In this document: positions 9,603-50,119 of the stretch, in pieces | How the letters are laid out: every line of letters begins with the position of its first letter | How positions within the stretch are numbered: the first letter of the stretch is position 1 | NCBI GenBank assembly: GCA_024704765.1 | Contig: JAKMXF010000255.1 | Location: 62,001-126,000 of the forward strand | Source: Oopsacas minuta | Taxonomy: Eukaryota; Animalia; Porifera | DNA: 64,000 bases | Direction: 5' to 3' | Translations under genes and position numbers: made by a program | Notes under the pieces: model-generated | Database searches by the model: none | What the model was told of the DNA's origin: nothing | The model's input: only the letters and a program-made list of their open reading frames with translations

Positions 9603-12230
9603 ATGAGTATTAGACCAGCAGACCTGAATAATTTCCTATCCAGTAGAAGCTACATAGAGGGGTATGTACCTTCTCAAGCTGATATAGCAGTAATAGAACA
9701 TATAGGCAGCGATTGTTCGGATCCGTCTCTCATACACCTAATACGATGGCAACGTCATATCGGATCTTATTCCAAGAATGATCAGTTAGCTTTCCCTGGT
9801 ATTAAGAAGGTAATGTTTTAAATTTAATGTAATTTATTCACTTGAAATAATTATAATTCTCACATTGAAACTTTGGTAGAGTACAATTAGCTAAACAAAT
9901 ACTGAAATACATACACTAATTACTGATATATGAAAAGTATATATTTACGAGTTGTTTGTCAGAAAGCTAGGAGGTTACATTCCTGGTTCTCATGAGCTAC
10001 GATAATTCTATTCTTCTTGTCAATAGCTATTCCATAGAGATGATAGAACTTCTGATCTCCTGGTAGCATATCACTACTGATAGTGTGTAGGACTTCTCCT
10101 TTATTGGAGAATATCTTGATTTGATTTCCTCCGCTACCCCAATCGGCTACGATAATATTCCCCAGTTGATCAATTGAGAAGAAATAACTGTAACCTATCT
10201 CACTTTTTTCTATCAAACACCTCACTAGCTTTCCTTCTAGAGAGAATATTTGTAGATGGAAATGAGGATAGCAACCAAACATGACATACATGTTATCCTC
10301 GTACAGTTTTATGCTCTCTGTTTCTGTATCGGATTTAACTTGAGTAGTTTTGAGTTTGATTCTTTTCAGGAATTTGAGATTTTTATCAAACACAATTACT
10401 GATTTGTTATAAAGCTCACATCCATAAACATTCATGTTTCTATCAATATCAATTCCACAGACTCTTCTCTCTGTTTTAACCGATTTGATAGAATCATTGC
10501 TTGACTTTTCTATCTTTACTAGCTCGCCTATAGTAGATACGAAAATGAATTCATTCATTAGAGCTATTCCAACAGGCAATTGAGGTGTTGGTATTTTGTA
10601 GAGATGGTTACCTTCTCTATCGAATACTTGTATTATGTTAGCGCTATAATCAGCAACAAATATATTCTGTGTTTCGTTGTCAATTGCTATTTGCATTGGA
10701 TTAGCAATCTCACCAGAACCTGTTCCTTCTCGGGACCAGACAGGACACAATTTAACAGAATAATCAACTGGGATTATAGGTCTCTCCTTCAGTGCCACAA
10801 CCTTACACAAATCAATCACTGATTGTTCCAGCTGTTCCATCTTCCAGTCCAACTCGACCCACCCCACATTCACACTCCTTGCTACCTCCTCTCTGATCTC
10901 ATCTTCTATCGTTCGTAGATTCTTCTCGAGTACTTTCCTCAATTTGTTCCTTGTCAAGTCTCTTTCTAGTCCTTCTCTAGCTGTGTACAGTTCCTGGAGG
11001 AGCTCTCTCTTCTCATTGAACTCTTGTCTCGCTCTCATAACAACCTCATCCATCTCTTGTAACAGACTGTGCTCCCTCACTACCAACAGAGAGTGTAACT
11101 GCTGGAAGTTACTACTCACTTTCTCTTTCTCTATCTGCACGTGGTTAGTCAGATCTGTTAGATTCCTCTCTAACTCATTTACACACATCAGTTCTCCTAC
11201 AGCTGCTACTCGTGTCGCCATAACTCTTAACTCAAACGTATATTTTACTGATATTTTAGATTAGAAATTACTATATTTACGTTAAAACTATATTCATATT
11301 ATATAAAATCTAACTAGATTATTATATCAAATTACCACTATCAATATCCTACATAACACTACGTAAATCACATAATTATATCCTATGCTAACACTGTATC
11401 CCCTCGCTAATCCGAACAGCACTGTTCCGATTGCAGAATAATTCGTTCGATTAGTGAGCATTAGAATTATAAGAATACTATAGAATCTATGAGTAAATTT
11501 TCAAAAGTTGTACATATGATCAAAAGGTTGCCAAAACGTGTATTATGTTATTATGTATTTGTCCGCAGTAGAATTGTATCCAATAAGTTACTGTACATTT
11601 GTACTTCAGTATGGTGCTATTATTTAATTAGATTTATCTGTTTACTGTAGGATGTGAGTAAGTATGGTATCAGTCCCGTAGGTGGTAAGGATGTTGCAGA
11701 AGGAGGAGATGTTGACGATGACTTCGATCTGTTTGGAGATGATGATCCAGAGGAAGTTAAGAAGCAACAAGACGAATTGAAACAGAAACTGTAAATTTAA
11801 TTTTATTATTACAATCAACTCCCGTGATAATTACTTTGATATAAGCGGGTATTTCGCTATATCTGCGTTCGATATAACAGGAGTTGACTGTATGTAAAAT
11901 ATTTAACAACTATTCTTTAGGATAAGAGAGGCAGAAGAGAGACAAAAGAAGAAATTAGCAGAAGCTAGATCTACAATAGTTATGGAAGTTAAGCCTTATG
12001 ATGACGATACAGATATGGGAGAAATCGAAAAGCTTGTGAGAGTTGTACAGATGGATGGATTAAAATGGGGGAAATCTCAACTCATACCTGTTGCATATGG
12101 TCTCAATAGTCTACAGATAACAGCTGTTATTTACGATGAAAAGGTGTCAACTGAAGATCTATGTGAAGATATTGAGAAGAATGAGATCATACAGAGTGCT
12201 GATGTTGTATCGTTCCAGAAGTTTAGCTAA
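9603..12230 (+). CDS. EEF1B2: Elongation factor 1-beta
   Basis: Exons 9603-9809, 11651-11790 and 11921-12230 splice in phase: N-terminal LNNFLSSRSYIEGYVPSQAD, acidic DDDFDLFGDDD, GEF domain EVKPYDDDTDM...GLKWGKSQLIPVAYG. Confidence 0.93.
9959..11221 (-). CDS. Coiled-coil + NHL-repeat beta-propeller protein (TRIM-like, no RING/B-box), intronless, nested in EEF1B intron 1
   Basis: N-terminal coiled coil followed by NHL-type repeats (GEIANPMQIAIDNETQNIFVAD, FFSIDQLGNIIVADW, GIAIDKKNRIIVA). Confidence 0.85.
   Translation of the reverse strand: MATRVAAVGELMCVNELERNLTDLTNHVQIEKEKVSSNFQQLHSLLVVREHSLLQEMDEVVMRARQEFNEKRELLQELYTAREGLERDLTRNKLRKVLEKNLRTIEDEIREEVARSVNVGWVELDWKMEQLEQSVIDLCKVVALKERPIIPVDYSVKLCPVWSREGTGSGEIANPMQIAIDNETQNIFVADYSANIIQVFDREGNHLYKIPTPQLPVGIALMNEFIFVSTIGELVKIEKSSNDSIKSVKTERRVCGIDIDRNMNVYGCELYNKSVIVFDKNLKFLKRIKLKTTQVKSDTETESIKLYEDNMYVMFGCYPHFHLQIFSLEGKLVRCLIEKSEIGYSYFFSIDQLGNIIVADWGSGGNQIKIFSNKGEVLHTISSDMLPGDQKFYHLYGIAIDKKNRIIVAHENQECNLLAF
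11812..11890. mobile_element. MITE family A (Tc1/mariner-pogo type), short copy
   Basis: TA|caatcaactcccgt...cgatataacaggagttgactg|TA; terminal inverted repeats with TA target duplication, inside EEF1B intron 2. Confidence 0.75.
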
Positions 12231-12311
12231 TAACCTTAGAATAGTATTAGAGTTAAGTAGAATAGAGATTTTAGTGATATTAGTCAATAGTCAATTATAT
12301 ATCTTTCTATA

Positions 12312-12413
12312 CAGTTAACTCCCGTTATATCTAAGCTCAAGGGACCGGAATAATTACTTCGATATACGCGGGTTATTTCGCTATATCCACGTTTTATATA
12401 ATGGGAGTTAATC
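12312..12413. mobile_element. MITE family A copy
   Basis: TA|cagttaactcccgttatatctaagctcaagggaccg...tatataatgggagttaatc. Confidence 0.7.
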
Positions 12414-12467
12414 AATATCCCATCAAACAAATTCTCAATAATTCACGTAATACATTAGCATAATGCA

Positions 12468-15400
12468 ATGATAAGTACAAACACTGTTACTTCAAGTTCA
12501 ATCAGTCTCACAGAGGATATATCCTCTAACCCTCCTCCTCACATACAGAATTGCATTGAAGAGCTCCGATCGTTAGGAGTAACTATATCTAGACACAGAC
12601 TATATAAGGAAGTTATTAAATCTCATTCGCCGAAGGTAAATATTATGAATTATCTTATTGAAATATTTTCCAATTTGTTGTAATTATTAGTTACGAAAGA
12701 AGAGACGTATAGGATTAGCATTGGATCAGTATGAAGAGATTGTGACTTACAAAGCGCAGCTAGGTGGCGTTACTCTTAATCTGCGTCTACCAAGGTTAGT
12801 AATAGCTAATTACGTAGTATACAATTAGATTCCACTGTATTTTTAGTGATTTCTAAGACAGTTTTGTTATTGTAAAATTGTGTGTAGCTTACTAGCAGAG
12901 AGCTTCTGTTACTTAGAAGATTATCTTCATGTAAAGGGAATATTCAGAAAGAGTCCAGCTGTGAGTAGATTGAGAGAACTAGAGATATCACTCGCGTCTG
13001 GAAAAAATTTATCAGAGTTACGTCCTCCTCCTCATGACGTAGCTGGTCTCGTTAAATCGTTTCTACGTTCCCTTCCTGATCCTCTCTTCTCCGAGCAGAT
13101 CGTATCCATTCTAATACAATGTCCATCTCTCATGGCTAATGAGCTCAGTGGTATACTACTAGCCTGTACACTATTGAGTCCAGCTAGTCTACACTGTCTA
13201 CAAGCTCTGTTAGCTATGCTAGCTCTTGTAGCAGAGCATCATAGTGATAACAAGATGAATGAGAATAGCTTAGCTGTAGTTATTGCTCCTACCTTGTTCT
13301 ATAATAGAAACTCACTTAAAAAGCCTTCAAAGGAGAGAGCGACAACTCAGAATATAATCCATGTAAGTAGAGTTATATACATTAATATATTGCATGTAGT
13401 TCTATGTATTATCTGTATTAGGTCATTGAAACAATGTTAAATCATCTACAAGATATGGCTATGGTGGGAATACAAGGGACAGCTGATTCAGAGAAAACGT
13501 GGAAAGAGAGGAAGAGAACTGGATCTCTATCTGGTGAGTACCCCCCTATATTATCGGTCGGTATAGTATAAATCGACTCCGCTAATATAGGATCACATTG
13601 GGACCATACCATTTTGACCTGAATAAGCGGAATAAAGGTGTTGGCTCGATTAACACTATTTGTATTGTTCTGTTTCTGGACAAGTGACTGACCGATGGCC
13701 CCGTTAAGCAGAGTCTACTTTATTTTGTTAGATTTGTTCAAAGTATTTCCAAGGAAGAATTTTAAAGTACGTATAGCTTCACAACCTTATCCAATCAGAT
13801 CCAGAGATATATACGATATACGTGAGTTATAATTGTATATTAACTGTATGGGAGATTTCTTGCTGTTATTATTAATCCATTTGGTATTAGAGAACCCTCA
13901 GATCTTGTCGGGGGAAGTATCAGAAGCCCTCCCGATTATCAAGAAGAGTGTGAGAGGGAAACGTCCCCTTGAGAAGTACAAACCTCTTCTCACAGAAGCG
14001 AAGAGGGCTAGACTTCTGGAACAGAGTGGTAACATGAAAGAGGTCATGATACGTAGACAGATTCAAATCAAAGACAGAAAACTGGTCAGAAGGAATGCTT
14101 TTCTACAGAGAAGAGGCATGCAAACAACAGGTATATCCCTCACTCATTTTAATAAATACTCATTCAAACCCACAACAATACATTTCCTCATCAAACAATA
14201 GAATAGCGTTACTATTAGATTATACATAAGTCACACTAATTGTTGTTTAATTGTTAGGCATATTTCTATTCATATATTAATAGGATCAGATGTGTATATA
14301 ACTCCTGCATCTGGTTCAACACAAGTATTACAATCAACAACAAATAACTCTCCTAAGATACCTTTTCCTTTCGAGAATATTCGTGAAAATCTAGAATTCA
14401 AATTTATATCAGAAGATAAAATATCTGAAACCGTTTTCCCATCTCCTCAGAAATTGAATTCTCAAGACTCTGTTGCTACACATCTGGACACGAGTGGCGA
14501 TATGATACGCTCAAGGACTGAAGAGAGTTTGGAATTATTCGCCTCCTCTCTGCTAGACCCTGACTCCCAAACACAAACATCTGTATTTGACTCAACTCCT
14601 AACTTACCTAAGAAGACAATGAATAAGTCTAGCTACACTCTACCTAGGCCATCCATGGCTAGAAGGATGAACCAACAACTAGGCTATTTCCAGTGTCCAG
14701 AGAATAGAGTACATATAAATGATAAAGATGTACTCCTTCCTACTTCTATCCATGAGATATATATCTCTGCTAACGGATGTTCCTCCACACCTATTGCAAT
14801 GTTAGATAGTCCCATAAGAGTTATGAGTTCTGTCCAGCAATCAGCTGATATAAATACCCTCCCTACTCAGTTTGGTACTGTACCGTTACAAAGGGTGAGT
14901 TTTTGAGTACAATAAACAGCTGATATTCTAATTTTGCCAACACTTTGCACTCTCGAAAACTATAGTTCGGTTTTATATGCTCAAAATTCAAAAATGTAGG
15001 TCAGAGTGCCTTCTTCCCAAAAATTATGTCTATGGACAATTCATCCTAGAGTTAATACACTACACTATATGACTGGTTCTTAATTAATATATTTATAGAA
15101 TATACGATTGAAAGATAACCCAGAAGCTACTCTACTTCAACTTACAACTCCTCACTACACAGAACGTCACATACAGACAGATCTACCTCCTAGAACAAGG
15201 ATCCCTTATCAACATACTCCTATTACCCCGAATGCTTCACAAGATAAATCAAATAATACTTTCTCAAATTCTGAGATTTCGGTTGATACTACAGGACTGA
15301 CTGACTCAGAGACTCCTGCTTCATTTCATAGACAAAATCCTGTAAGGAAGAGTTTTAGGAAACTTTTGAGTCCTGTCCTGCCCATGAAGAGGGAAGGAGA

Positions 15401-16551
15401 GAGAGATTCATTTGGTAAGTTTAGTTCAACGACTGAACTGGGTCCACGGACGACAGCAGGGAGTACACAGGATCGCAAATAAGTATAAGGGTACACAGGC
15501 GACCGCTGGCTAGTTTATATCGAATATTTATTATTTGTATTTAGATAAGAGTAATGAGAGGTCTAAATCCAATTCAAATCCGTCCAGTTTGAAGAGGAAC
15601 AAACCTCAGAGACGATGGAGTCTGAGAGCTATGTTTAAGTCACCTACTCCTCCCCGACCTGTCATCAACACGACCGTCATTTCTTCTCCTGTTCCAATCA
15701 AAATCCCTTTCCATCCAGTATTCACAGATAGGAACACATGCTATAGAGCAACTCCTCCCATCGTGAAGAGGCCATGTAGCAAATGCACGCCCCCTCTAGA
15801 CCGAGTAGACTATTCACCAGCTGATGCGATTGGTACAGAGGTAACTCCAAAGTTCACTGAATGGGCCGGTTCCCCGCCCTCCATAATCTCATCTGAAAAT
15901 TCAGATGGGACTTCGTACGTTGAGCATAATCCTCAGAAACAGTCTTTGTCTAAAGAGGACCCTCTCTCTGATCCCTTGCCTCCCCCTCTCCTACACAATA
16001 CTACAGCTACACCCTCTGATAATACGTCAGAGGATTTTCTAAGAGACGATTCGTTTTCTGACACTTCATTCGATACGTCACCATATTTACTAGATGAAGA
16101 ATCTCCAGTTATTCATTACCCATTTGTAGAAGCGTCAGTTTTCGCGAAACCTCACATGGGAGCGATCAAAGTCCTCCCTGACCTCCCGCCCGTCGCTCCA
16201 CTCAAACGGACCAAGTCCCCTTTTAAACCTGCTACCATGCCAAGAGGGAGTCATACCTTCCAAAGAGAATCTTCCCTCAAAGAAGTCAATCCAGAAATCG
16301 AAGTAGATTATAGACCTGTGCCTGAAATCGAGAAACATAACGTCATTATAGACAGAGAAGGTTGCTGTGTGGAGACGAAACCTCTTCCAGATGTATCAGA
16401 CTGTGTAAAGCTATTCGAAGCCATGGCTAGGCCTACTGGTGGTGTTAGACGGAACACAAAGATACGAGCGTCCTTCACATCATTTGACAATGCACGAAAT
16501 CACTCACGACTGATTAAGCGGACGAGTATGAGGGAACCTGATCGCTTTTAA
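12468..16551 (+). CDS. ARHGAP11A: Rho GTPase-activating protein 11-like, multi-exon
   Basis: GAP domain LEDYLHVKGIFRKSPAVSRL (Arg finger), HDVAGLVKSFLRSLPDPL, NKMNENSLAVVIAPTL; long low-complexity S/P/T-rich downstream exons ending at 16551. Confidence 0.75.
13566..13718. mobile_element. Degenerate pogo/Tigger-like MITE in an ARHGAP11 intron
   Basis: Left end atcgactccgctaata versus reverse complement of right end agtagactctgcttaa. Confidence 0.4.
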
Positions 16552-16567
16552 ATGTAAGAATATAATA

Positions 16568-16685
16568 CAGTAAACTCGTGTTGTAACGAAGTACTCGGCT
16601 TATTTTGTTATAAGCGGAGTAATACCGATTATTTTCAAGCTATAGGAGTAATAATCACTTCGTTATAATGGAAGTTATTCATTCT
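16568..16685. mobile_element. Degenerate pogo/Tigger-like MITE
   Basis: TA|cagtaaactcgtgttgtaacgaagt...acttcgttataatggaagtt inverted ends. Confidence 0.5.
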
Positions 16686-17622
16686 ATTCTTTTTTAGTGT
16701 TTTAATTACAAAACCTATCTCACTTTCACGGCTTATGACGAATAGACTTATCTTTACATTTGAGGAACACAGACAGAAATCGAACTTCTATCCTCTCAGC
16801 AACAGAAATAATTACAGAGCGAAAAATATTCTTTACATATTTCATAAATTGCTCTTCTTACTAATTAGTTATTTTTTGAATAATATTCGCTGTTCCTTTA
16901 TACTTATTGTATTTTATTGTCAATTGACCAATACTCATACAAGATATACTTCAGGTTAATAATCGTACTGCAGGCTAGGTAGACAGTTTACTTATTATAG
17001 AGTCATATTAAATACATGTACAGTTGGATTGTTAGATAAAATATTGGTTTACAAATTCAACAAAACTGCTTAGAGTCAATGGCGAGCAGACCTATCTCAA
17101 AACATTCAAACAATGAGTATTATCTCTGTCCACCAACTACAGGTAATATTATTGTATTCATTTATATTTATAGTGTAACCTCCAGTAAACGGTGTGCCAG
17201 GGTCGCCAAAAATGCAACCCAGTTTCTCCCGTATGTGATGGTTCTTTTTTATGGCAGTAGGAATTCTCTTTTTTACTTCATTTCCATTAGTTCCCCATTT
17301 ATAGAGATTACACTGTACTTTGATATTTCAGTGCAACTCCTTTAGGTACATGGCCTAATGGTATGGACGTTGTGTGATGTCCGTCCGTCCCCCAGTATTT
17401 AAAGAGTCATTGGTAAATAAAATACATAGACAAACAATGAACTCTTCACGAGGATACAAACAAATATTATACAATAAGACTAGCTAGTAGATTCGAAATC
17501 AGGAATATTTAATAATGTTAGGTTTAACAATATATCGCAAATAAGTCCATACATAGATCAATTATTAAAGCTGGTAAAATAATTTGAACAAAGGGATTTA
17601 CGGGTAGGTACACACAAACAGT

Positions 17623-20600
17623 TTATATCTTATCACTGCTCTTCTTAGCTCCGTTCTGTAACAACATATCCAATTCATTGGATTTACTCGTCAAACTGAG
17701 AATACTCTCACAATCTCCTTCAGAAATATCTTGCGTATCTTCTGGTGAATTCCCAGCCTGATAGCTGAGCTGTTTGATGATAACAACTCCATGATTATCG
17801 TGTCCTGTCTTCTTCAAAATATCTTTACCGTCCTCTCGGATATAAGATCCACCCCCTCCGCCACTGAATCCTCCTCCTCCTCCTATATTAAATCAAATTT
17901 CACTTTCTATGTAAATTAATTAATTAGACTATCACAGGAATGTATGGTTAAAATACCATACATTCTTAAATTATCTATATATTATCACCTGAGTATCCTC
18001 CACCCCCTCCTCCCCCTAGCGACCCGATAGCTCCTCCCCCTCCGAAGCCCCCACACTCCCCTGCATCTCCTCCATTCATGAAACATTTCCCAGTTGATGA
18101 GTTATTGAAATAACCAGCACCTCCGTATCCGTGTGAGAGATCTCTTATTACAGCGTCTTTACCATTACCTCCTTTCTTCCCTCCTATACCAATTAGAAAT
18201 ATATATCTACGTATGCTATTTGTCTATTAAACGTTTACATACCTTCAGCATAGTAACGGCCCACTCCATTCCTACCCCACTCTTCAACGCTCCCATCTTG
18301 TCCATCAGGATCATCCTCATCGTATCCTCGGGTACCACCACCCCCTCCTGCTACGATGAGGGGATTATTCCTTCCATTGACAGACACGAATGTACCTCCA
18401 CCGCCTCCACTACTAGAAGCATGTCTCTGAGACATTCCCCCACACAGAATCTCTAGTCTATCTCCTCCCTAAACATGACAGTTAAAAACTACTCCAATTC
18501 AATACATATTTCGACATAACGGGAGTTGATTGTACTTATTCTAACTCACAGACAGATAGAAGATAGCAGTTATATCAGCTCCACATCCTCCCTTAGACAT
18601 CAGTCCATCAGCTGCCTTAGCACCTCTGGTCTGTATAGCATATGTACCGTCTATTGGTATAGAAATATCCACAATCTCACCTACATAATGTATATCATGG
18701 ATACAGTTAAGGAGATAGGAATGCATAGAAATATACCTGTATAACCTATTTCTAGAGGAAAGTCGTGGAAAGATCCATCAATATACTCTGACCATACTCC
18801 CCAGCCAGCAGCATTCTCTGATCGTGCTCTGAACTTGTATCTAGCTCCAGGACAGAGTCCATCAATACGTGCCTGACCCCCTCTAGCCGCATCCATAGAG
18901 AAAGAACAGGTCTGAGACTCTGCGAGCAAAACTTCTACTGACCCCCTATTGATCGAAGGAACGAATTCTCTCTCAATCTCATATCTTGTCACCTTACAGT
19001 CTGGAGGATCCCACTCCAAATAGAATAATCCCTTCTTGTGTACGCATACTATATTGGTTGGGACAGGTCCACCACCTACAGCTCCTATTTACAAGACAAA
19101 TAATATAAACTTAACATGTAACACTATCTCCTTATCCAGTGGAAACACACCTAAATCATCTAACTGCTTCAGGAAGGCTTCATCCATCATGACAGGTATA
19201 CCAGGTTGTACTAGTGTTCTGAGATGACTAGAGTTCTCCTCGCTAAGCACACGCTCTATAGCTTGAATAGCACTATCACTGTTTGGTAGGAATTCTGGTG
19301 GTTTCTTTTGTAGTAGTATATTAGCCATGTCGTTACTACTAGCTATGCTAGATGCTGAGATAGCTAGTTGCTGTTGTTGGTTCTGTAGACGTTCTAACCG
19401 GATACTGTACTCTTGTTCCACGGCATTCATCAACACTGCTCGGCGCCGTTGTAATGCTGACTATAGATAGAATTACATAAACATCAGCTGTGACCAAGTT
19501 CGTATGCGAATTTATACTTATTTTTATAAAATTTAAAATAATTAACTCACTTCATATTTCGCGATATCATCTCGTATCGTTTTCAGTGCAGCGTCCGCAG
19601 AAGGTCTCAGATCAGCTAAAATATCCTGCATCTCGTGTCTAGCTCTCTGTACACGAGATGTGTATATCCCTAGCCTCTGTAGTAAGAAGTGTAGCTTTGC
19701 TCTTCGTCGCTAAACAATAAGTATCAAATTAACTAACATAACTGTCAATTTATTATTTAATTACCTTTACTGCATCTGACAAAGGCTCTGGCGTAATATT
19801 AAGTAGGGAGTCTTCTTGTGAATTCATACAATGCTGACATAGAAACAGATTAGTATTAGAATCAAAGAAATCTGCTTTAAACCCGTGTATAGAACAAGTT
19901 ATATCCGAAGGAGAATTGCTACTCATATCTGTGATTAGTATAGGGTTGTGTGTTCTAGCTATTGCACTAGGTCTATCATGTTCATCTACAGAGCATTCTT
20001 CACATAGTTTAAAACCTGTAATTAAAAATAAACCTCGGTATATATGAATGACATCACATACCATTAGGGCCACATAGACTGCAAAACATGATAGCCTCTC
20101 TTTGGCTGCAGGACTGACAGATAAGTAGAGTCTGTACAGGGAGGTTATCTGAGGCGTCTACTAGTGCATAGTTTATAGGAAGTCCAGACAACAGGTTGTT
20201 AGGGAGAGCTGTTATTTTCCGACAAGCTGGACACTCTATAGTATTATGTGCGACTAATTGTGTAAGACATTTTGAACAGAAAGTATGTCCACAGCCTAAT
20301 ACACGAGGTTGTTTATCATTCATGCCAGAGAACATCTCTGAACATACATTGCATTCCAAGTTTGGTAGCGAGTTCTTCTCAAGGCCAGCATCTAAAGAAG
20401 TTGATATTAATGAATACACGTAATTATATAGAGTTTAAACTTACATATTTTAAAACTTACCGCCAATAGATCTGTACGATCCAAAGTCATAAGAGTGTTC
20501 TTTACGTAGAGTAGCAGAGGGGTCAGATATATTGATGCTACCATCTGTGTTGATTGAGATAGGAGAACTCTTACTGGGAAAGTTTGATGCTACCATCCTT

Positions 20601-23077: not shown

Positions 23078-23144
23078 TGTCCAATATGGAGTTCGGCTGC
23101 CTGTAGGCTTTTTACGATATTTATTGATTCTGTCCTGTAATTAG

Positions 23145-28664: not shown

Positions 28665-28754
28665 TAATATTAGATTTCTTTTGTATAATATTATCGAGAC
28701 CAGATTTATAGAATTTATAGCATCTACACTTTTGCTGTACAATTAGTGCTGAAT

Positions 28755-38668: not shown

Positions 38669-39034
38669 ATGGATCAGTATATAAAAGACAATGAACTCGT
38701 AGAAAATTATAAAAGAGTTGGACTACGAATTATCAAGTAGCATTGCATAACTTATAGTAGTAGTTGCCTAATATGAGCCTATTGTTAGTGATCATACCAA
38801 GGTATAGTAATAATAATAATCATTCTTTGCTATATTCTATGACTTGAGCAGCGAATACAATAATTTTCCTGAGGATTATTCCATTTTTTGCGTGTTTAGT
38901 AATTATTCCAACACCTCCAACTTTTGGTTTAGGAATTCCGATTCATTTTTTGCAATTTTTGGGATATTATTTATTGAAGAATATTTGTGGTATTTCTTAG
39001 TATTTTATGTGCGTTTGTGTGTGTTTTCATTTAC

Positions 39035-39240
39035 AAGTTCTACTAATTACATTGACTATTGAATAGGAAACCTAACTAGCAATCTAATAAGAAATTTGGC
39101 TCCGCTCTTCTATGCATTCTAATTACAGCGATTCGATCCATCTAATTCTCAATTTCTGACACAGCTTCCTAAATCACTACAGGGACAGGGAGTTACACTA
39201 GTGAGATTGGCCAAACATTACGTGAGTGAGATGTTACAAC
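39035..39240 (+). pseudogene. Degenerate duplicate of CEP192 exon 1 and flanks
   Basis: tcttctatgcattc.aattacagcga...ccatctaattctcaatttctgacacagc...tcactacaggg...tagtgagattg...ccaaacattac|gtgagt recurs at about 40660-40875; this copy lacks the ATG and has a ~30-nt deletion. Confidence 0.8.
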
Positions 39241-39306
39241 TACTAGAGGGGTGGGATGATGGTTATATATGGGAGGGGGGAGTGCGCCGTTTGGACTTTG
39301 TCTATA

Positions 39307-39446
39307 CAGTGAACCCTAGTTTATCCGAACATTTCCCTGGTGCCATGTCCTATTCAACTATGTGTAAATAACCTCGATAATCAGGAAGATAGATATTCGA
39401 ACGCTTTTGACCAGTCCGAATGAGTTCGGATAATAGAGGTTGCGCT
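39307..39446. mobile_element. pogo/Tigger-like MITE
   Basis: TA|cagtgaaccctagtttatccgaac ... gttcggataatagaggtt. Confidence 0.55.
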
Positions 39447-40695
39447 TATTCACACCCTCTCGACAGACATTTAATTAAGTCTTGTGTCACTAGCGAGCTT
39501 GATAATCCTAGTCCCCAGATTTTTTGGCTTACGACATTATATCTGCCATCTTGATGACAATGACGAGTACATAGACTGACAAAGGAACTAGTTTGACTCA
39601 AATTTTCGAGTGTTCTCACCTTTAATACTCGTATAAACGTGGAATGCTATATAGTCACCAAAATGATACGTAATCTCATTTCCCATGGCTCATACATACT
39701 AGATAATCTGGCGTTTAAGTCAGACAGAAACACATTTTGACTGAACGCTCATAACCTCAGGAGAGAAATATTCTCATATAAAATACTTTAATCCAAAGAT
39801 TATGCTCCAATTGGATTATCTTGAGAAAGGAAATCAGATTTATTGTCCACGACATTCAAGGTAGGTTCCATTAAATACGAAATCCTACGCGATAATCTCA
39901 TATAAAATATTAGTTAGGAACATATCAAATTATACAGGACAGGCAGTTATTACATAATTCCGGCAAAAGCGCTATTCTCAGGGCTAGTCATAGTATTTGA
40001 CTAAATGCATGTATTCATACATAACTTTAAGTATGGTGGAAGATGGCTTGGTGATATGCCGTAAGGCAAATTGAACGCTGGGAGACCCTCCAAAATGGCC
40101 GGAGGGAGTTCCATTTACAGACCCTAAACCTTAAAGAGGTTAAAAGGAAATTAAATAGCCATCTCCGCTCCAGTGAGTTATAATTTATTTTTATAGACTT
40201 TCTACAACTAAAACTGTGGGCTAACTAAAATGTAGAATGCTGAACATATTCAAGTATTTTACCCCAAGTGGAAGACAGAAAAATACAAATATTTTAGTTA
40301 AGATAAATAGAAAATTTACTTCCAGTGAGTTATATATTCTTCATGGATTCTTGTCAGAAATTCATAATGTATTTACAATAATTCAATCTTACAGGCTGAG
40401 GATAAGAGTACTAGAATGCTGAGCTGAGTGAACTGCGATGTGGAATTTATTATTATTTGTATTTTATTGTAGTTGTAAATTAATGAATTAAATGAAAATA
40501 CGAATTATTTAAGTTTCTTCTATTTGCAGTTTCTGTCTAGTAACTTTGCCTATATGCTTTTTCTGTGTATCACCATGGCTTGGCCTTCCACTAGGCGAAC
40601 TAGTTAGTCTCTTAGGAGGGCATAATCTTTGCATTTAGGGAAATATTTGTATCACAGTTCTCTACTAATTAGTTTTGAATATCGAATAGGTAGCA

Positions 40696-43600
40696 ATGTC
40701 TAATAGAGAAATATGGCTCGAGTCTTCTATGCATTCCAATTACAGCGAAGCTTCCGTTGGAATAATAGATTTGGATAATTTCGACCCATCTAATTCTCAA
40801 TTTCTGACACAGCCCCCTAGGTCACTACAGGGGAGTTACTCTAGTGAGATTGATCCAAACATTACGTGAGTAAGTTACAATTACAAGTATTTATAGCGGA
40901 AATTTTGATTCAATAATTCTCTTTAATTTATGACGATTCAAAGGTCCGACCTATTTAAGGCTACTTATTTAGAATAACAAAATTATTTCATAGCTATTAT
41001 TGTGTAATTACATTAATCGTCTTTTATTCAGTCTAGAAGAGGATACGTCACATGGAGCATTGACAGCTTCTCCAAACTCTACTCTGATGGCACCTTCACA
41101 ACCCATTAATCAACCCTCCTCCTATCCTAAGCTAAACCCATTTGAAGATAATAATAATATGGATCAACCAGTTCCTCAGTCTTTCGACGGACATTTAAGT
41201 CCTATGTTTCCTAACCAAGAGGTTAACTCTTCGTTTCCTAACCAAGAGATTGATCCTTTTACATTTCAGAAGCAGGAATTCGACGCTTCCCTCTTTTCAA
41301 ACGCGGAATTTCATGCGCCTGGTGTTAGCTTCATGGAGCAATTAGAAGGAGATGAGGATGATCTGAAGAGGAAGAACTCTGTCATACCAGAGCAGGAGAT
41401 CGTAGAAATCTCTCCTCCCAGCTCAAATGTACTTGACAAGCCTGGAGATTTTACTACATACTTCGGAGTACGTTCTAACGAACTGGGCAACTTGACTCAG
41501 CAAATTACTCCAACTTCTAGGCCTCGCTTCTCTGCCACAGCAATACGTTCTCCACACAGTTCAGCACAGCTGTTTAAGAACAATACACATTCTCCTGAGC
41601 CTGTGAGACTGAAAAATGAACACACACACCCTGATAGACACATAACTCCATCAACTGACTATATGACCCCCGATTTGTCAGAGAATAATAACGAAGATCA
41701 TTCAGATGACCTTCTTAACAAATCCAATGATCTTCTCAAGAAAGTAACATCTCTCCTAGAGAGCAAGAAGTTTAATGCTGATGAGTTTATTAAGACATTA
41801 GAATCTGAGGCTGAATTACATATACCAATAGCTACTAGCAAAACAGAGCATAATCTCCCATTACAAACCATTCCCTCTATGTCAGAGTACGAGCGTCTCC
41901 CTGAGCACTACCTCACTCCCTTGCCGCAGACCCCTATACATGCTACAGACATATATCCTACTCAGCAGGATAAGGACATCACACTACCAAACGCTTATAT
42001 CGTCCCTAACAACTCACATTCCATTGCTCCAAACCATCACGACTACCTTAAGCCTGTTCTAAGCGGAGATTCACTAGACAGCTGTAACATGGAAAACATA
42101 CCAAATTTCTCTTCTATCTTACGTCAGCATTCCTTATCCAATTCTTTTGATGAGGCAAGAGATAATAACGATCTTACACCATTCAATGACGTCACAATAC
42201 AACACGACTATGCTCAATCAGCTGACGATGTTAATAGCATCCCATTTGATAGTCCATCTCACAAACATTACAATAATGAAGTTACATTACAACACTCCTT
42301 GCTAACTAACTCAGCTGATGACGTTAGAGAAGTACAATACCGTCGTCGTAACTTATCGAGTACATCTGCTTCCTACTCAATGCCAGAAGGTCTTGACGCC
42401 CTGGCTTCCCTTCCTCCTCTCCCCTCTCCCCCTCCAGCTACATATATACATCATACAAGTCGCAGAGCTTCTAGAGAGGAGCTTACTCCTAAAGAGCTAT
42501 CGGTAGACATAGAATTAGAAGACGGGACAGCTCTTAACTGCTGTACTGGGGGTATAAACCACGCATTCCTTAATCTGACTAACCAATCTCCTTGCTGGGT
42601 ACAGACTCAGTTAGAATTCAAGAGTGTTAAATTTGGGTCTAACCTTATTGACACTCAGTCAGAGAGTATGCCATTCTCCATGTACAATAGGTGTATTCTG
42701 GGAACTGCCAAATCCGAACAAGTTAAGATATCATTCGCTCCTGGTAGTCCAGGCATTTATACTATTGAACTTGATGTGTATATATCAAAGATTGTTGATT
42801 CTTCTCTCGCTAAACCCTCCAAAACCTTCTCATTCACTGCCGAAGCAATAAAACCTGAAATATCACTTCTGTATAAACAGGAATCTTCTAAGGTGTTAGA
42901 TTTCGGTTTTGTGACAGAAGGCAAGTCTTATGAACAATGTGTTACAGTTGTCAACAAATCAAACTGTTCTCTCCCAATTAAGATATCTCTACCTACCAAG
43001 AAATTAACATGTAGAGACTTATCTCTATCTCTAACTTCTCATTCTGGTAAGAATCCTGACATACAGAAGGAGAGTCATATTTCAACAGTTCTAGAAGCTA
43101 GAGGAGAGGGAGTTAGAGGTAAAATGGACCTCTGGGTACGATTTAAACCCTCCTATCACCCCCAGATAGGTGTGGGATCAAAATCCCCTGCTCCTCTTGG
43201 GGAAATGAATTCAATTGTGGAAATATTTCTAGACGGCCCCTTCGCTAGCTCAACTTCTAAACTAATAAATTCCATCCCAATAACCGCGAATTTCGCAGAT
43301 TCCGACTTAGTAATTCTCGAATCAATCGACACACTAAGATTCGAGACATCAGTAACTCGTTCTCTCACCAGATCATTCACCCTACACAACCGAGGCAGCA
43401 TTCCTATTAGCCTAACAACGGAATTAGAACCATCTTCTACAGATTTCATGATATCACCATATCACATTAGTTTACAACCAGGTCAACAGTCTCCAGCCTC
43501 CCTTTCATACCGACCTTCCAAACATGAATCTACGTACACAGGGACACTACACATAATCTATAACCCAGGTAATAAGCGATACACCCTGAAGGTATCGGCA

Positions 43601-45877
43601 AGAGAGGAGGCCCCCGAGTCACCTCCGGACACTCAGGATTATAACCTCCCTCCCTCTCCCCCTCAAACAAGCAAACCCTCTCCTTCCAGAGACAACTATC
43701 TCTTAAGTAACATCCTCTCTCTCAATTGGGGGGCTACACAGCTTGACGAGTGCATTGAACGTAAGATTGTATTATTCAATACTAGTGATGATAATCTTAA
43801 CCTCAGTGTTGAGCTAAATTCTCAGTTCTTCTTTGTCAAAGATACAGATGACAAATTTAAATCTAGCTTTCGTATGAGCATACCAGCTCGTGTAAAGCTT
43901 CCTACAGTACTCACGTTTGCTCCAACAGAGCTTGTGGTGTATAATGACAACCTATCTATTACAGACTTATCTCATAACAAAGTGTTCCAGATACCACTGA
44001 CTGGTTACGGAGGTAAGAGCCAAATACTCATAGTTAATGCAGAGAGAACAACAGAAGGATACTGGATGAATATAGGAGAAGTTAAGAAATTGGAGAAGAA
44101 TATTTTCAAAGTATATTTACTCAATAATGGGATTAGAAAGGCTTACATAAAAGCTGTATGCAGAGATAACCAACCTAATAAACCTATATTGTCTCATACA
44201 CAAGTCAGTATAACTCCTTCAGAGTTCATAATATCACCACAAGACTACAAATCTATTCTAATTACCTTCTCACCAGGTGCTGATCATGCTCTGCTCTGTG
44301 AGAACTCTCCACACTGTATAGCTTATGTAAGCTTAACTACATGCGACTGTATGACTGCTAAGATATACTTCTCACAGCTAAGAGCTAAGAACCTACAAAT
44401 ACCTCCTCCATTTGATTATCTACACAAACTGTTCACTTTAGATATTTCAGAAGATGAGGATTACTCTCAATTCCAGCTATCTACACATCCTCCGTCTCCT
44501 CCAGCTGAGACAGAGGTAAGTATCCCTCTGATAGGTTACCCCCCTTCTGCCCCTTCTCTACCAAGACCCCGGCCCTCATCTGTACCTGTAACTCGCCCTC
44601 TCTCCCATGATGATATTATCTGGTCTAACAGGAGTAGTCCAATTGGTACAGCTCCAATACTGCACCAATCCCCTGACCTTATCCCCCCTCTGACCAACAA
44701 GAACAGACGGCGTTTGAGTAGACACTCTACTAACGACAGTCCTTCCCCCAAACCCAGTCACAGAGCTATCCATAGTCCATCCCGATCCGGTCCTAAGCCC
44801 GCATTCACTTTGTACCCCTCCCAATTATCTCTCTGCTCAGACTCAAGAGAACCAGCTAAACTATACATACATAATCTCTCTCATTCAATAGCTAAGTTTG
44901 CTGTAGTATATCCTAAGCAGTTTGTTACTGTATCACCAGCAAGAGGTAGCATAGATCCAGGACGTGAAAAACAGCTGTTAGTCAGTTCTCTATTGATGGA
45001 TATGACTGATCTACCTTGCTCGTTAACTGAATACTTAACAATACACTATGAGGATTCTGTTAAGAGCGTACCATTGAATATCCTAATGGAATCTCCTAGC
45101 CCTACAACACCTGTGAGAGAGAGTTTTGCTTCTGTTACCAAATACCTATCTCCTCCTAATATCCTATTCTCTCCTATTAAGAATAATTCTGTTGCAGACT
45201 TACCTATTACAATATCAAACCCACATAACTTCCCAATACATTGGAGCTTAGCTTCTATGGGGCAAGCTGCATATCAGGAAGGAGAGGAAGGATCCTTAGA
45301 AATACTCAAAACTAGCTATGCTGTATTCTTCTTCCATAGACTATCAGGTGGGATCGCTTCTCATGGTACAAGTAGTATAAGCGTTACATTCCAGCCTAGA
45401 AACCCCGGTACATATACTCAAACCTGGGAAATGCAGCTTACGAAAAGTGTGAAGATGATTGATAGCATAAAACTATCTGTTTCTGGTAAAGCGGAGGATA
45501 CAGAAGTCACTAAACAACCGCCAAATAACTCCCATAAAGAAACACATAAGTCTCACAGTAGAAGAGTATACCTAGATCCTGATATACTGAACTATCCACA
45601 AACCAGGCCTAACACTAGTAGTACACTGAAAGTATCAGTCTACAACAAATCTGACACATCAATTCAGTTTAATGTCAATGAGATATCTATACCATTCTCT
45701 ATCCACAGGCAGCATACAGTATTTACACTAGATCCTCGACATTGTGCTAGATTGCCTATAATCTTTAACCCACAGTCACAGGGTTATTTTGAAGAGGTTC
45801 TAGCATTGAAATCTTCAAACGGTAAGAAGCTACATGCCCTGCTGAAAGCTGAGAGCTGTTTTTATCCCAAATTATGA
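40696..45877 (+). CDS. CEP192: Centrosomal protein 192 / SPD-2 (tandem ASH/PapD-like domains)
   Basis: Exon 1 40696-40865 splices in phase to 41032-45877; the SPD2-domain signature LNWGATQL...FAPTEL...FQIPLTGYGGKSQI...YLLNNGIRKAYIKAV matches CEP192. Confidence 0.85.
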
Positions 45878-46031
45878 ATAATAAAATAATATATCACTCG
45901 TGAGATCAAGCGCACACTTTCTCAACTATACTCTATCAAATTATAGTTTCACACTTTTAATATTAATTATTTAAGCAACTGATTATTAAAATAGACATTC
46001 TATTCGAGTTTCTTATTTCTTTTAATTTATA

Positions 46032-46099
46032 CAGGGGAAGCCGGTTATAAGAACATGTATTGCTACTCCCAAGGGGGTTCTTATAACCGGCATCCACTG
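46032..46099. mobile_element. 68-bp MITE with 23-bp terminal inverted repeats and TA target duplication
   Basis: TA|caggggaagccggttataagaac ... gttcttataaccggcatccactg|TA (2 mismatches). Confidence 0.8.
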
Positions 46100-46132
46100 T
46101 ACAAGTATTAAACTGCCTCACCTGTAGTTACA

Positions 46133-46912
46133 ATGGTGACTAATAGGAAGCTAATTAAAATTGGTATCGTGGTATTTGCACTGAATGGGATAGTCCTTGC
46201 ACAAGTTGCAATCATTGAATTAAGGTCTAGGAAAGCTCAGAAGTACATGAAACAAATGAAACAAGACTCAATCCCAATCCCTGTAGACCTGAAGGATCGA
46301 GTTGGTGAATTGCTTGGTTCTCGTGTTTCCCTCACTGGTTGTTATGACCACGCATCAGAAATGTATTTATGCCCTCGCTACTTTATAACAGAACACATGG
46401 AAGCAACTCCTTATAAGGAAAATCACATCGGTATAAACGTTATAACTCCATTCTATTGTAATGAGCTGAAATCTAGTGTTCTTATAAACAGAGGGTGGAT
46501 ACCTAAACAGCTGAGGGACCCTAGTACACGAGAAGAGGGACAGATTGAAGGAGATATACCATTAATAGGTGTGGTTACACAACCTCCTAAAGTTATAAAA
46601 CAAACTAAACAAAACAAACCTGATCTTAACAAATGGGAATATATTGATGTAGAAAATATGGCAATAATGCATAACACAGAACCTATACTATTAGATTGTA
46701 GTTATGAAGCTTCTACACCCGGGGGACCTATTGGAGGACAACATGATTTTGGGATATCTAAGGACCCGAAAGATTACTTTGGGCATTGGTACGCTTATAT
46801 TTCTACTGGAGGATTAGTCCTGTATCTTTCTTATTGTGTGTTCATGTTTTTTGGCAGACGAGCACGGTTTCATTATAAGAGTAGTACTATAACGGCTAAA
46901 GATTCTAGATAG
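46133..46912 (+). CDS. SURF1-like protein, divergent tandem paralogue
   Basis: SURF1 core VITPFYCNELKSSVLINRGWIP...TPGGPIGGQ is retained; the N-terminal TM segment lacks the GTWQ..R..WK motif. Confidence 0.8.
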   Translation: MVTNRKLIKIGIVVFALNGIVLAQVAIIELRSRKAQKYMKQMKQDSIPIPVDLKDRVGELLGSRVSLTGCYDHASEMYLCPRYFITEHMEATPYKENHIGINVITPFYCNELKSSVLINRGWIPKQLRDPSTREEGQIEGDIPLIGVVTQPPKVIKQTKQNKPDLNKWEYIDVENMAIMHNTEPILLDCSYEASTPGGPIGGQHDFGISKDPKDYFGHWYAYISTGGLVLYLSYCVFMFFGRRARFHYKSSTITAKDSR

Positions 46913-47054
46913 TATATTGTGTGTTTATTGCGATCAAATAAAATAGAAATTTCGTATACCCAGATATTTATTTTGAGCAAATAATTGCAAATTTTTAATC
47001 CGAAGTTCTGTCTGCTTAAAATGCACTATTATTGTTGTGTTTAGTGAAAGTAAG

Positions 47055-47804
47055 ATGAACATTACAGCAAAGTTACGTAGACGTCTGTACATAATCCCAG
47101 TAACTACGTTTATACTGGGTACATGGCAGATATATCGGTTACGATGGAAACTCGATTTAATCTCCAAAATGAAGGATCGAACTACTAGAGAACCTATTCC
47201 CATTCCATCAGACCTCAAGCACCGTTGTCAAGAGCTTCTCTACTCCCATGTATCCCTCAGTGGTAATTACGACCATTCATCTGAGCTATATCTATTCCCT
47301 AGGCCATTCAATGCAGATAGAATAGCATTACCAACATACAGACCCAATCATCCAGGTATTCAGGTGATTACTCCATTCTACTGCAATGAACTTAAAGCTA
47401 GGATTCTAGTTAACAGAGGTTGGATACCTAAACAACAGAAGAACCCAAACACACGTCAAGAAGGACAGCTGCAGGGGGAGGTAACATTAGTAGGGATGGT
47501 AAGGGATAGCTCAAAAAGTTTCGTGTACAGTGGTAAGAATCGTCCTGAGATTAACGAATGGCAGTATGTAGATGTTAACGAGATGTCAGGTATTTGTGGT
47601 ACTGAGCCGATTATACTGGATTGTAGCTATGAGAGCTCAATACAGGGAGGGCCAATAGGAGGACAAACTAATATTAACATCAGGAATAAGCATGTGGAGT
47701 ATATATGTGTATGGTATGGACTCACTGTAGTTATTGGCTATATTTTGTTCAAGTCTAGAGCTAGTCTCCCTAGGAAACAGTTCCCATTGATTAGAAATAA
47801 ATAA
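47055..47804 (+). CDS. SURF1: Surfeit locus protein 1 (cytochrome c oxidase assembly)
   Basis: TFILGTWQIYRLRWKLDLI, ILVNRGWIP, GGPIGGQTNINIRNKHVEYICVWYGL. Confidence 0.92.
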   Translation: MNITAKLRRRLYIIPVTTFILGTWQIYRLRWKLDLISKMKDRTTREPIPIPSDLKHRCQELLYSHVSLSGNYDHSSELYLFPRPFNADRIALPTYRPNHPGIQVITPFYCNELKARILVNRGWIPKQQKNPNTRQEGQLQGEVTLVGMVRDSSKSFVYSGKNRPEINEWQYVDVNEMSGICGTEPIILDCSYESSIQGGPIGGQTNINIRNKHVEYICVWYGLTVVIGYILFKSRASLPRKQFPLIRNK

Positions 47805-47901
47805 TTTTAGGTATTAAAATGTTAAAACAGTTTCAAATGCAATAATAACAGGATAGAGGATAATGTCTTTTAGTGTACAATGGTTGGGTAATTAGGTTTG
47901 T

Positions 47902-50119
47902 ATGGCATCTGCAGACTCAGCTCCTTGCGAGAAGAATGGAGTAAAGAAGTCTCGTGCTCAGAAGAGAAGAGATAAGAAGGCAGCAGAAGAGGGACGTATT
48001 AACGAGTTGATAGCAGAATTGGATATGATACAGTCTGATGGTGATATAGAGATGGAACAGCTGATGCTAGTACTATCTCCACTAAACTTAAAGACTATCG
48101 ATATTAAGCCAGGTGAGTATGAGTGCAATTTATGATTTAATAATTTGCAAATATTTACGTTATACTACTCTAGATGGAGACTGTATGTACTCTGCCCTGT
48201 CTCACCAACTCGTGGTTGTTAGAGGCGATAAAGTGAGTGTACAACAGCTGAGGAGGAAGTGTGCTGAATACATGCGATCAAATAAACCACATTTCATACA
48301 GTTTATGTTGAAAATGACAGAATCATTCGAGGAATATTGCGAAAAGGTAAATTATAATTTCATAATATTTCTAATAATAAAGATTATTATTCATCTTTAA
48401 ATATGACAACACTTGTAATATAATACATTAAAGATAGCTATTATTATAGCATTTAAATACAATCTCACTCCTTATATCATATTCATATAGTAAACTATTG
48501 CATATTACTATTGAGAATATTTATGGCAACACGAGTAGCAGCAGTAGGAGAACTGATGTGTGTGGATGAGTTAGAGAGGAATCTAACAGATCTGACTAAC
48601 CACGTGCAGGGAGAGAAAGAGAAAGTGAGTAGTAACTTCCAGCAGTTACACAGTCTGTTAGTTGTGAGGGAGCACAGTCTGTTACAAGAGATGGATGAGG
48701 TTGTTATGAGAGCGAGACAAGAGTTCAATGAGAAGAGAGAGCTCCTCCAGGAACTGTGCACAGCCAGAGAAGGACTACAGAGAGACTTGAAAAAGAACAA
48801 ATTAAATGAAGTACTCGAGAAGAATCTAAGTACACTAAAAGATAAGATCGGAGAGGAAGTAGAAAGGGGTGTGGATGTGGGGTGGGTAGAGTTGTATTGG
48901 GAGAAGGAAGAGCTAGAACAATTAATTAATATTATTGGTAAGGTTACGATTTTGAAAGAAAAACCATTCAAAACTGAGGATTATACTCTCAAATTATTTC
49001 CTGTCTGGTCCCGTGAAGGAACAGGTCCTGGTGAGATTGAAAATCCTATGCAAGTAGTGATCGACAGTACAACACAAAATTTATATGTAGTTGATGCAAG
49101 TGCTAACATAATCCAAGTATTCGGTAAGATAGGTATCCATCTTCATAAAATACCAACTCCACCATCTCCTGTTGGTATATCAGTAACAGATGATTATATT
49201 TATGTGTCAACTAAAGATCAACTTGAGAAGATAAGTAAAGGTAACAACGAATCGGTTGGATCAGGTAAAACTGAGAATGAAATTTGGGGAATTGATATTG
49301 ACAAGAACACGAATAATATTTATGGATGTGAGCATGAGAAAAAGTCTGTTATAGTGTTTGACGAAAATCTCAAATTTGTTAAGAGAATCGCTCTTAAATC
49401 TCCTCAAATCAAGTCCAATACAAAAACAAACAGTGTCAAACTTTATCAAGATAATTTGTACGTCATGTTTGGAGGATTTCCTCCTTTCCATCTACAAATA
49501 TTCTCTCTAGAAGGAGAGCTAGTGAGGTGTTTGATAGAAGAAAATGAGATTGAGTGGAGCTACTTTTTCTCAATCGATCAATTGGGGAATATTATCGTAG
49601 CAGATTGGTTGAGGGGAGGAAATCAAATCAAAATATTCTCTAACAAAGGAGAAGTAATACATACTATCAGTGACGATATGCTACCAGGTGATCAGAAGTT
49701 CGATTTCCCTCGAGGAGTAGCGGTCGATAAATCCAATAAAATCATTGTAGCTCAGAAAAACAAGAAATGTAGTCTACAAGCTTTCTAAGCTCAAAACTTA
49801 GTTATTTATTTATTAGCAAAATCTAATAGACAATTATTATATTTGTATTAGCTGTTTGAATTGCATTAGTTTATGAGTCTCGTTTTGCAGTTTTCTGGGA
49901 TAATGTTAATGTTTCTAGGTTGAGGATTCTACTGAGTGGGGAGGTCACATCGAGTTAGAAGCTCTCTCTCAAACTCTACAAGCACAAATACACGTCTACC
50001 AAGCTGGAGGAGCTACCCAGATTATCGGAGAATCATTTCCAGCTCCCTTTCTTCTATTATCTTATCACAAACACCAATTCCATCTGGGAGAGCATTACAA
50101 TTCTATTGTTAAGAGTTAA
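47902..50119 (+). CDS. OTUD6B: OTU deubiquitinase 6B-like
   Basis: Exons 47902-48112, 48174-48346 and 49919-50119 splice in phase: IKPDGDCMYSAL (catalytic Cys), WGGHIELEALS, SYHKHQFHLGEHYNSI (catalytic His). Confidence 0.88.
48523..49788 (+). CDS. Coiled-coil + NHL-repeat protein, paralogue of 9959-11221, nested (same strand) in OTUD6B intron 2
   Basis: First 89 aa differ from the other copy at only 4 positions; NHL repeats follow; intronless. Confidence 0.85.
   Translation: MATRVAAVGELMCVDELERNLTDLTNHVQGEKEKVSSNFQQLHSLLVVREHSLLQEMDEVVMRARQEFNEKRELLQELCTAREGLQRDLKKNKLNEVLEKNLSTLKDKIGEEVERGVDVGWVELYWEKEELEQLINIIGKVTILKEKPFKTEDYTLKLFPVWSREGTGPGEIENPMQVVIDSTTQNLYVVDASANIIQVFGKIGIHLHKIPTPPSPVGISVTDDYIYVSTKDQLEKISKGNNESVGSGKTENEIWGIDIDKNTNNIYGCEHEKKSVIVFDENLKFVKRIALKSPQIKSNTKTNSVKLYQDNLYVMFGGFPPFHLQIFSLEGELVRCLIEENEIEWSYFFSIDQLGNIIVADWLRGGNQIKIFSNKGEVIHTISDDMLPGDQKFDFPRGVAVDKSNKIIVAQKNKKCSLQAF

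Follow-up and report, generated by a model that had tools for sequence, protein, structure and literature searches.

The window analyzed here is a stretch of 64,000 nucleotides (nt) from contig JAKMXF010000255.1 of the glass sponge Oopsacas minuta. It contains two genes, A and B, that encode proteins with a helical N-terminal part and a six-bladed NHL propeller. Both are nested in introns of housekeeping genes: B lies between the halves of an OTU domain, and A lies between exons of EEF1B. We put the probability at roughly 80% that A and B are old, positionally conserved nested members of a gene family, that the A-type copies of this family multiply by DNA duplication and diversify in the top-face loops, and that the 5' end of B has been converted.

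Two nested genes, their hosts, and their age

The two genes, the exons that enclose them, and a neighboring anchor gene are given below. Some bounds are those of an open reading frame (ORF), and L032 is a locus in another assembly.

9959-11221, minus strand: gene A, an intact intronless ORF of 420 amino acids (aa) with a coiled coil and a six-bladed NHL propeller, antisense in an EEF1B intron
48523-49788, plus strand: gene B, an intact intronless ORF of 421 aa counted from the ATG, sense in an intron of an OTU-deubiquitinase gene (OTUD6B-like)
9603-9821 (ORF bounds), plus strand: EEF1B exon 1, the host exon upstream of A; EF-1-beta N-terminus SYIEGYVPSQAD, with a weak Pfam Arc1p_N_like match
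11654-11794 (ORF bounds), plus strand: EEF1B acidic central exon, the first host exon downstream of A; translation DDDFDLFGDDDPEEVKKQ
11982-12230, plus strand: EEF1B guanine-nucleotide-exchange (GNE) exon; Pfam EF1_GNE, E 4.3e-27
47902-48135 (ORF bounds), plus strand: OTU-deubiquitinase exon 1, seen as an ORF; homologous exon in L032 at 4363-4602
48113-48400 (ORF bounds), plus strand: OTU exon 2, the host exon upstream of B; Pfam OTU, E 2.7e-12, profile positions 3-62
49934-50113, plus strand: OTU exon 3, the host exon downstream of B; Pfam OTU, E 1.7e-9, profile positions 66-128
50230-51009, minus strand: YRDC/Sua5 gene, the synteny anchor after the OTU host; Pfam Sua5_yciO_yrdC, E 1e-38; same place and strand in L032

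The host exons were searched singly against Pfam. Pfam matches and exon translations identify host exons on both sides of each gene. An earlier note, made from the letters of this window, had placed A inside an EEF1B intron and B inside an OTUD6B intron, and this placement is confirmed. ORFs and Pfam also agree with its description of two intronless coiled-coil/NHL paralogues at these positions.

The mechanical ORF of B opens at a TTG at 48511. The A and B proteins are identical at 301 of 421 positions (71%, BLASTP), with one gap of a single residue. The NHL repeat model PF01436 scores 29.5 bits in A and 36.5 bits in B, with a cut-off of 20, and the Pfam matches of both proteins are solely to NHL or six-bladed-propeller families. 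RING gives no Pfam match in A or B, and zf-B_box gives none in A, B, or 17 N-terminal segments of family members, so the reported absence of both domains holds. The ORF of A opens 13 residues ahead of the first helix, so that the protein starts with its helical part. The A and B sequences contain neither a signal peptide nor a transmembrane segment.

An AlphaFold2 model of the gene A protein, built on a 45-sequence alignment, has a mean predicted local distance difference test score (pLDDT) of 87.8, and its propeller scores above 90. Helices at residues 14-91, 95-114, and 128-137 are followed by a 24-strand, six-bladed propeller at 160-420. The best structural matches found with Foldseek are the NHL domains of Thin/TRIM32, TRIM2, TRIM3, Brat, and TRIM71 (6d69, 7b2r, 7qrw, 4zlr, and 8j72; E 1e-16 to 1e-15). 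Over the TRIM-NHL set, the E values are 1e-16 to 1e-14 and the TM-scores 0.73-0.79 relative to the target. A sequence profile searched against the PDB recovers these proteins at E 1e-38 to 1e-23. The predicted helix layout appears TRIM-like, and the TRIM_CC model matches the N-terminal segments of 2 of 17 family members, weakly, at E of 0.24 or higher.

Counterparts of both nested genes occur in other assemblies from ENA. P0122, on ctg28048 of ERZ25069837 (locus L032), lies in the same OTU intron as B. The order at L032 is OTU exon 1, OTU exon 2, the NHL gene (+), a second OTU-domain exon ('EWGGHLELEAL...'), and YRDC (-). With the EF1_GNE exon as query, EEF1B was located on the ENA contig that carries P0122 and in a second assembly, ERZ25072730. 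The EEF1B loci L034 and L035 both contain a TPR gene, EEF1B exon 1, an antisense NHL gene of 418-420 aa, and the GNE exon. EEF1B exon 1 of the window is 76% identical to the counterpart exon in L034, and the order of elements around the acidic exon recurs in L035. RhoGAP follows EEF1B in ERZ25069837, as it does in the O. minuta window. The NHL genes in the EEF1B intron of the other assemblies are 68-69% identical to A.

An NHL gene occupies the EEF1B-intron position in two other assemblies and the OTU-intron position in one. Because position and neighbors are conserved, neither A nor B is a recent insertion. Judged by gene order, an NHL gene has been present in each host intron since before the sampled sponge lineages separated. 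The earlier note had proposed a family that disperses by retroposition or transposon-assisted copying; for these two loci, a recent arrival in introns is contradicted by this conservation, and the flanks that other copies share also speak against it. Intron locations this old and conserved do not argue for a copying mechanism that is mobile or targets introns.

The propeller of B is 75% identical to that of P0121 and 73% to that of P0122, both from ENA assemblies, and 61-66% identical to those of genes in its own genome (word-index protein search). Since the B propeller is closer to homologues in other assemblies than to genes of its own genome, the divergence between the A and B propellers is best read as old paralogy. 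The B lineage is single-copy in the O. minuta genome, where its nearest paralogue reaches only 71-74% at the nt level in the mid region. At locus L033 (ERZ26869290 ctg304972), two 416-aa NHL genes at 1284-2534 (+) and 3956-5206 (-) are inverted about a YRDC fragment, and one of them is P0121, a B-lineage gene. This pair points to local inverted duplication even within the B lineage, which is otherwise conserved.

The 5' end of gene B

Within residues 1-89, A and B differ by exactly four substitutions (N15D, I30G, Y79C, and E86Q). Their DNA includes an identical run of 94 nt at ORF nt 142-235 (48664-48757 in B and 10987-11080 in A; columns 551-644 of alignment A1). Alignment reproduced both of these observations of the earlier note. 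Homology between the two genes opens about 10 nt 5' of the ATG and closes at the stop codon in the DNA alignment. Neither end shows a poly-A, a target-site duplication (TSD), or a terminal inverted repeat (TIR), in agreement with what had been noted before. The segment of B concerned is the following.

48529-48773, plus strand: putative gene-conversion tract in B, ORF nt ~7 to 251-255, codons 3-84, comprising most of the first long helix (14-91)

Identity by segment was obtained by a separate BLAST of parts of A and B against their own genome. The first 270 nt of B are 90-97% identical to about ten A-type copies, the best being a copy on contig C10 (97%). The next 659 nt of B fall to 71-74%, and the last 337 nt reach 78-83%. 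The first 270 nt of A are 90-96% identical to A-type copies, and its other 993 nt are 89-95% identical. Mosaic similarity is confined to B because both parts of A are equally close to the other copies. At the 5' end, the identity of A and B to second-tier paralogues is 67-71%.

The protein comparison follows the same division. B is 59% identical to its orthologue P0122 over residues 1-82 and 74% over residues 83-421; B and A are 96% identical over the first segment and 65% over the second. In a six-sequence DNA alignment, B retains the base of the orthologues at ORF nt 6, carries A-type states to nt 251, and carries orthologue states from nt 256. By a hand count in one alignment, 12 of 245 positions in the tract distinguish A from B, compared with 35 of 165 just past it. 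B differs from the closest A-type copy in the tract at 6 of 245 positions, including a GG at nt 88-89 that is private to B.

The upstream OTU exon, the leader, and the downstream flank of B are in the same arrangement as in L032. With the flanks and host of B orthologous in arrangement, the event was therefore a non-reciprocal, ectopic conversion with B as the recipient. The tract of about 245 nt, as read from these alignments, appears to have been copied into B by ectopic gene conversion from an A-type paralogue. Between species, the proteins are least conserved over their first ~80 residues, which rules out nucleotide- or protein-level constraint as the cause of the 5' identity.

Part of the earlier proposal on gene conversion stands. 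The tract is real, and it is a single event in B rather than a constant coiled-coil module maintained across the family. The notion of such a module fails: A-type copies are equally similar along their length, second-tier paralogues fall to 67-71% in this region, and the coiled coil diverges between species. The 94-nt run was considered as a special element and rejected, being merely the longest difference-free stretch among the 12 A/B differences in the tract. The near-identity of late A/B blocks is also as reported. These blocks are equally conserved in homologues from other assemblies and are 78-83% identical at the DNA level, so conversion or homogenization was rejected for them. They are the framework of blades 5 and 6.

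Antisense ORFs of 101-158 aa cover the helical 5' part in all four copies inspected (10944-11264 (+) and 48495-48971 (-) in the window, and in L002 and L006). They were rejected as genes. Their presence in every copy inspected is best explained as a by-product of codon composition, since GAG/AAG-rich codons leave no stops on the opposite strand.

The family and its propeller face

The family was searched in the O. minuta assembly, which has 61.46 Mb in 365 contigs. From 772 first-look candidates, at least 100 scored matches were obtained. Among these, the first tier consists of about ten intact copies with 83-91% aa identity to A, plus pseudogenes and fragments; B is 72% identical to A in this search. 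A further tier lies at about 54%, often as inverted pairs, and a large tier lies at 25-31%. The claim that A and B belong to a multigene family, not merely to a few copies, is borne out by this count. A public NCBI record names one A-type copy (P0001) a 'PEP-CTERM domain protein'. This looks like a mis-annotation because Pfam gives only NHL/propeller families.

Flank alignments of the eleven closest copies define three groups that share flanks: L002, L007, and L008; L003, L006, and the pseudogene L011; and L004 and L005. A, B, and L009 have private flanks. The spread of the other copies, judged by the upstream and downstream flanks shared within groups, is ordinary segmental DNA duplication. 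The flank comparison that the earlier note had proposed shows shared flanks in the three groups and no TSD or poly-A. No mark of a processed retrogene (poly-A, TSD, or homology of untranslated regions (UTRs)) was found in the A/B, A/L002, or flank alignments.

L002 is a third family member on the same contig (C255:24327-25586), 47 kb upstream of A and 91% identical to it. The ORFs of A and L002 are 95% identical at the nt level, and homology ends about 27 nt ahead of the ATG and at the stop. Two other copies were inspected by their surrounding ORFs. L002 is probably intergenic, as it lies between a 307-aa ORF of unassigned function and the start of an ABC-transporter-like gene; L006 was uninformative.

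The ~27 nt ahead of A are a conserved leader.

11222-11248, minus strand: conserved leader ahead of the ATG of A, ATATACGTTTGAGTTAAGAGTT; the sole flank sequence that A shares with other copies

In A-type copies and in the B-lineage orthologues of other assemblies, the motif ATAT(A/T)CGTT(T/C)GA(G/A) precedes the ATG by 10-25 nt. Among B-lineage loci, it is located at ~4975-5000 in L032 and ~1258-1283 in L033, and it is degraded in B itself (48496-48522, plus strand). Its occurrence in B-lineage genes of other assemblies makes it a family element, not a duplication boundary. Based on its position, the leader could be a core promoter, an element of the 5' UTR, or the splice acceptor of a non-coding first exon that is not seen here.

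In propellers, the D-A and B-C loops form the top face by convention, and Brat and LIN-41 bind RNA there. In a protein alignment of ten copies, the variation among nine A-type genes is concentrated in 13 short clusters. On the AlphaFold model of A, 12 of the 13 map either to the B-to-C loop or to the D-to-A loop with the residues that open strand A, and the other maps to a C-D loop. All six blades are hit.

Codon differences between A and L002 were counted by hand in alignment A2. The whole gene has 39 non-synonymous and 13 synonymous differences. The helical part has 7:7, the top-face loops 26:1, and the rest of the propeller 6:5; a one-sided Fisher test of the loops versus the rest gives ~0.005 (computed by hand). 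In numerous loop codons, two or three bases are changed. B and P0122 keep most hypervariable-loop residues in common. These patterns argue that the A-type group diversifies its binding face and that B keeps its face unchanged. Propeller diversification, as the earlier note had envisaged it, therefore survives among A-type paralogues, where it is focused on loops, and fails for the A/B pair, whose difference is old paralogy.

The Oopsacas and Aphrocallistes glass-sponge genome papers contain zero occurrences of 'NHL'. No description of the family was found in the literature searched on NHL in glass sponges and on sponge immunity.

Other genes lie near the OTU host. Just upstream of it are two tandem, single-exon SURF1-family genes at 46133-46912 (+) and 47037-47804 (+), with Pfam E values of 2e-18 and 4e-43; the first is the more diverged. 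At 41000-45877 (+), an uninterrupted ORF of 1625 aa contains Cep192 domains 1-8 and ASH/HYDIN-type Ig domains. It is apparently a single-exon Cep192-like gene.

Interpretation and relation to known systems

In the preferred reading, the family would be made up of glass-sponge cytosolic proteins with a long helical (coiled-coil-like) N-terminus, a TRIM-NHL-type propeller, and neither RING nor B-box. A (antisense, in EEF1B) and B (sense, in the OTU gene) have been nested since before the sampled lineages split. A-type copies would multiply by small DNA duplications and differ chiefly in the D-to-A and B-to-C loops. A recent ectopic conversion would have moved ~245 nt from an A-type copy into B, leaving the flanks, host, and propeller of B untouched. 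This event would be the origin of what the earlier note called a 'homogenised 5' end'. The data show directly that the genes are nested, that the nesting is conserved, that similarity along B is mosaic, that flanks are shared, and that variation is focused on the loops.

The proteins probably pair through their long helices as TRIM proteins do. Each pair would then present two propellers, with top faces that bind a partner. The A-type group may serve as a diversifying binding repertoire, and B may have a fixed partner. The variable residues are mostly aromatic or aliphatic and not basic, which points to protein or peptide ligands more than to RNA. The absence of RING and B-box means that the proteins cannot themselves be E3 ligases. 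They could be binders or adaptors, or they could pair with other family members. An A-type first helix in B would make its pairing surface A-like.

Several points weigh against this reading. The ORF of A is 89-95% identical to those of other copies, yet its flanks are unrelated to theirs; conversion may have overwritten the entire ORF of A, or A may have been the source of copied pieces no larger than the ORF. The conversion is called from segment identities and a hand-read alignment. That the other ENA assemblies are glass sponges is an inference from housekeeping exons of 70-77% identity and from shared gene order. The assignment of the top face follows the propeller rule and the order of strands in a predicted model, not measured coordinates. 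The substitution counts were made by hand for one gene pair in one alignment. Lastly, a profile search of the PDB and Pfam with the helical N-terminal part returned nothing significant.

Other explanations were weighed. A dispersing family might land in introns by retroposition or transposon-assisted copying, its coiled coil kept constant by recurrent conversion. The intronless genes, the many scattered copies, and the limitation of homology between A and its closest relative (95% at the nt level) to the ORF and ~27 nt upstream all suit such copying. It is nonetheless improbable: two other assemblies keep the EEF1B-intron locus in place and one keeps the OTU-intron locus, poly-A, TSD, and TIR are absent, and homology closes with the stop codon, which means that the copying did not include a 3' UTR. 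Elsewhere, groups of copies have flanks in common, and copies occur in local clusters or as inverted pairs. B-lineage genes of other assemblies also carry the ~27-nt leader, a family motif, and neither the A-type copies nor comparisons between species show special conservation of the 5' end. A different objection concerns function. The A-type copies may be recent, partly redundant, and under relaxed constraint, with loop variation as tolerated drift and no recognition role. Whole-gene counts for A and L002 are about 3:1 and near neutral, and the family includes several pseudogenes and fragments. Drift is still an unlikely account, given that ten copies have intact frames and that the framework and coiled coil are under purifying selection (6:5 and 7:7). 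Only homologous loop positions, in all six blades, carry the excess, with radical and many multi-nucleotide changes (26:1, Fisher ~0.005).

Two further alternatives bear on the 5' identity itself. Selection on the nucleotide sequence, e.g., for an RNA structure, a regulatory element, or an antisense ORF, would account for the conserved synonymous sites in the tract and the long antisense ORFs over the 5' part in the copies inspected. This is very improbable, as the same region is just 67-71% identical in second-tier paralogues and only ~59-66% identical at the protein level in orthologues from other assemblies, and the tract sequence is not conserved in B-lineage orthologues in the six-sequence alignment. 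Moreover, the boundary at nt 251-256 is abrupt, and GAG/AAG-rich codons by themselves predict antisense ORFs. An assembly artefact, in which A-type reads were joined to the B locus, is conceivable in a repetitive family with a tract that fits within read length. It is very improbable: no other copy is identical to the tract (the closest has 6/245 differences, among them the GG at nt 88-89 that is private to B), the OTU exon and leader upstream run on without a break in orthologous positions, and the reading frame is unbroken across the junction.

Under the preferred reading, the A and B loci are fixed landmarks within an otherwise fast-turnover family. The EEF1B-intron and OTU-intron genes are recognizable by position in other glass sponges and thus provide orthologous outgroups. 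These can be used for dating expansions and for detecting conversion and selection across the family. The B tract indicates that modules move between distant family members, and the replaced helix is, on the predicted model, a likely pairing surface. What is new here is the two positionally conserved nested members, a conversion tract supported by outgroups, and the finding that one lineage is conserved where the other diversifies. From its sequences, the family is a candidate for a novel kind of diversified binding repertoire in an animal that branched off early. A more far-reaching and doubtful idea is that glass sponges possess an inherited intracellular recognition repertoire on the NHL propeller, seeded by ancient, intron-trapped 'anchor' genes, in which helix conversion would keep B, an old member of fixed specificity, able to pair with the young, diversifying ones. 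The NHL propeller fold is not known to be used in such a recognition repertoire.

The closest known relatives of the propeller are the TRIM-NHL proteins (Brat, LIN-41/TRIM71, TRIM2, TRIM3, TRIM32/Thin, Mei-P26, and NHL-2). These have the same six-bladed NHL propeller, and a long helical segment lies ahead of the sponge propeller where TRIMs have their coiled coil. Unlike TRIM-NHL proteins, the sponge proteins have no RING or B-box, searches with their helical part return no TRIM coiled coil at a significant level, and their genes are intronless, multicopy, and hypervariable on the top face. The RNA-binding faces of Brat and LIN-41 are basic, whereas the variable residues read from the A-type alignment are mostly aromatic or aliphatic.

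The nearest ESM Atlas clusters are made up of molluscan 'hypothetical proteins' of ~440 aa with NHL or B-box-NHL content (scores 0.92-0.93, 179-183 shared features), a likeness in language-model features without an alignment and thus a lead only. They are similar in length and NHL content and form large lineage-specific families, but some retain a B-box. Short NHL proteins in lineage-specific expansions are therefore not unique to sponges.

Conserved nested genes with interlocus gene conversion are another parallel. As in those systems, a gene lies wholly within a host intron and is kept there across species, and a discrete, non-reciprocal tract has been copied between dispersed paralogues. 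The mechanism is ordinary; the module replaced, most of the first long helix, is distinctive.

TRIM5alpha and the fish finTRIMs are multicopy intracellular proteins in which a helical dimerization part is joined to a C-terminal binding domain with surface loops under positive selection. The sponge family may be like them in concept, a comparison drawn from established knowledge. It differs in that their variable domain is B30.2/SPRY, not NHL, and in that they retain the RING and B-box E3 modules.

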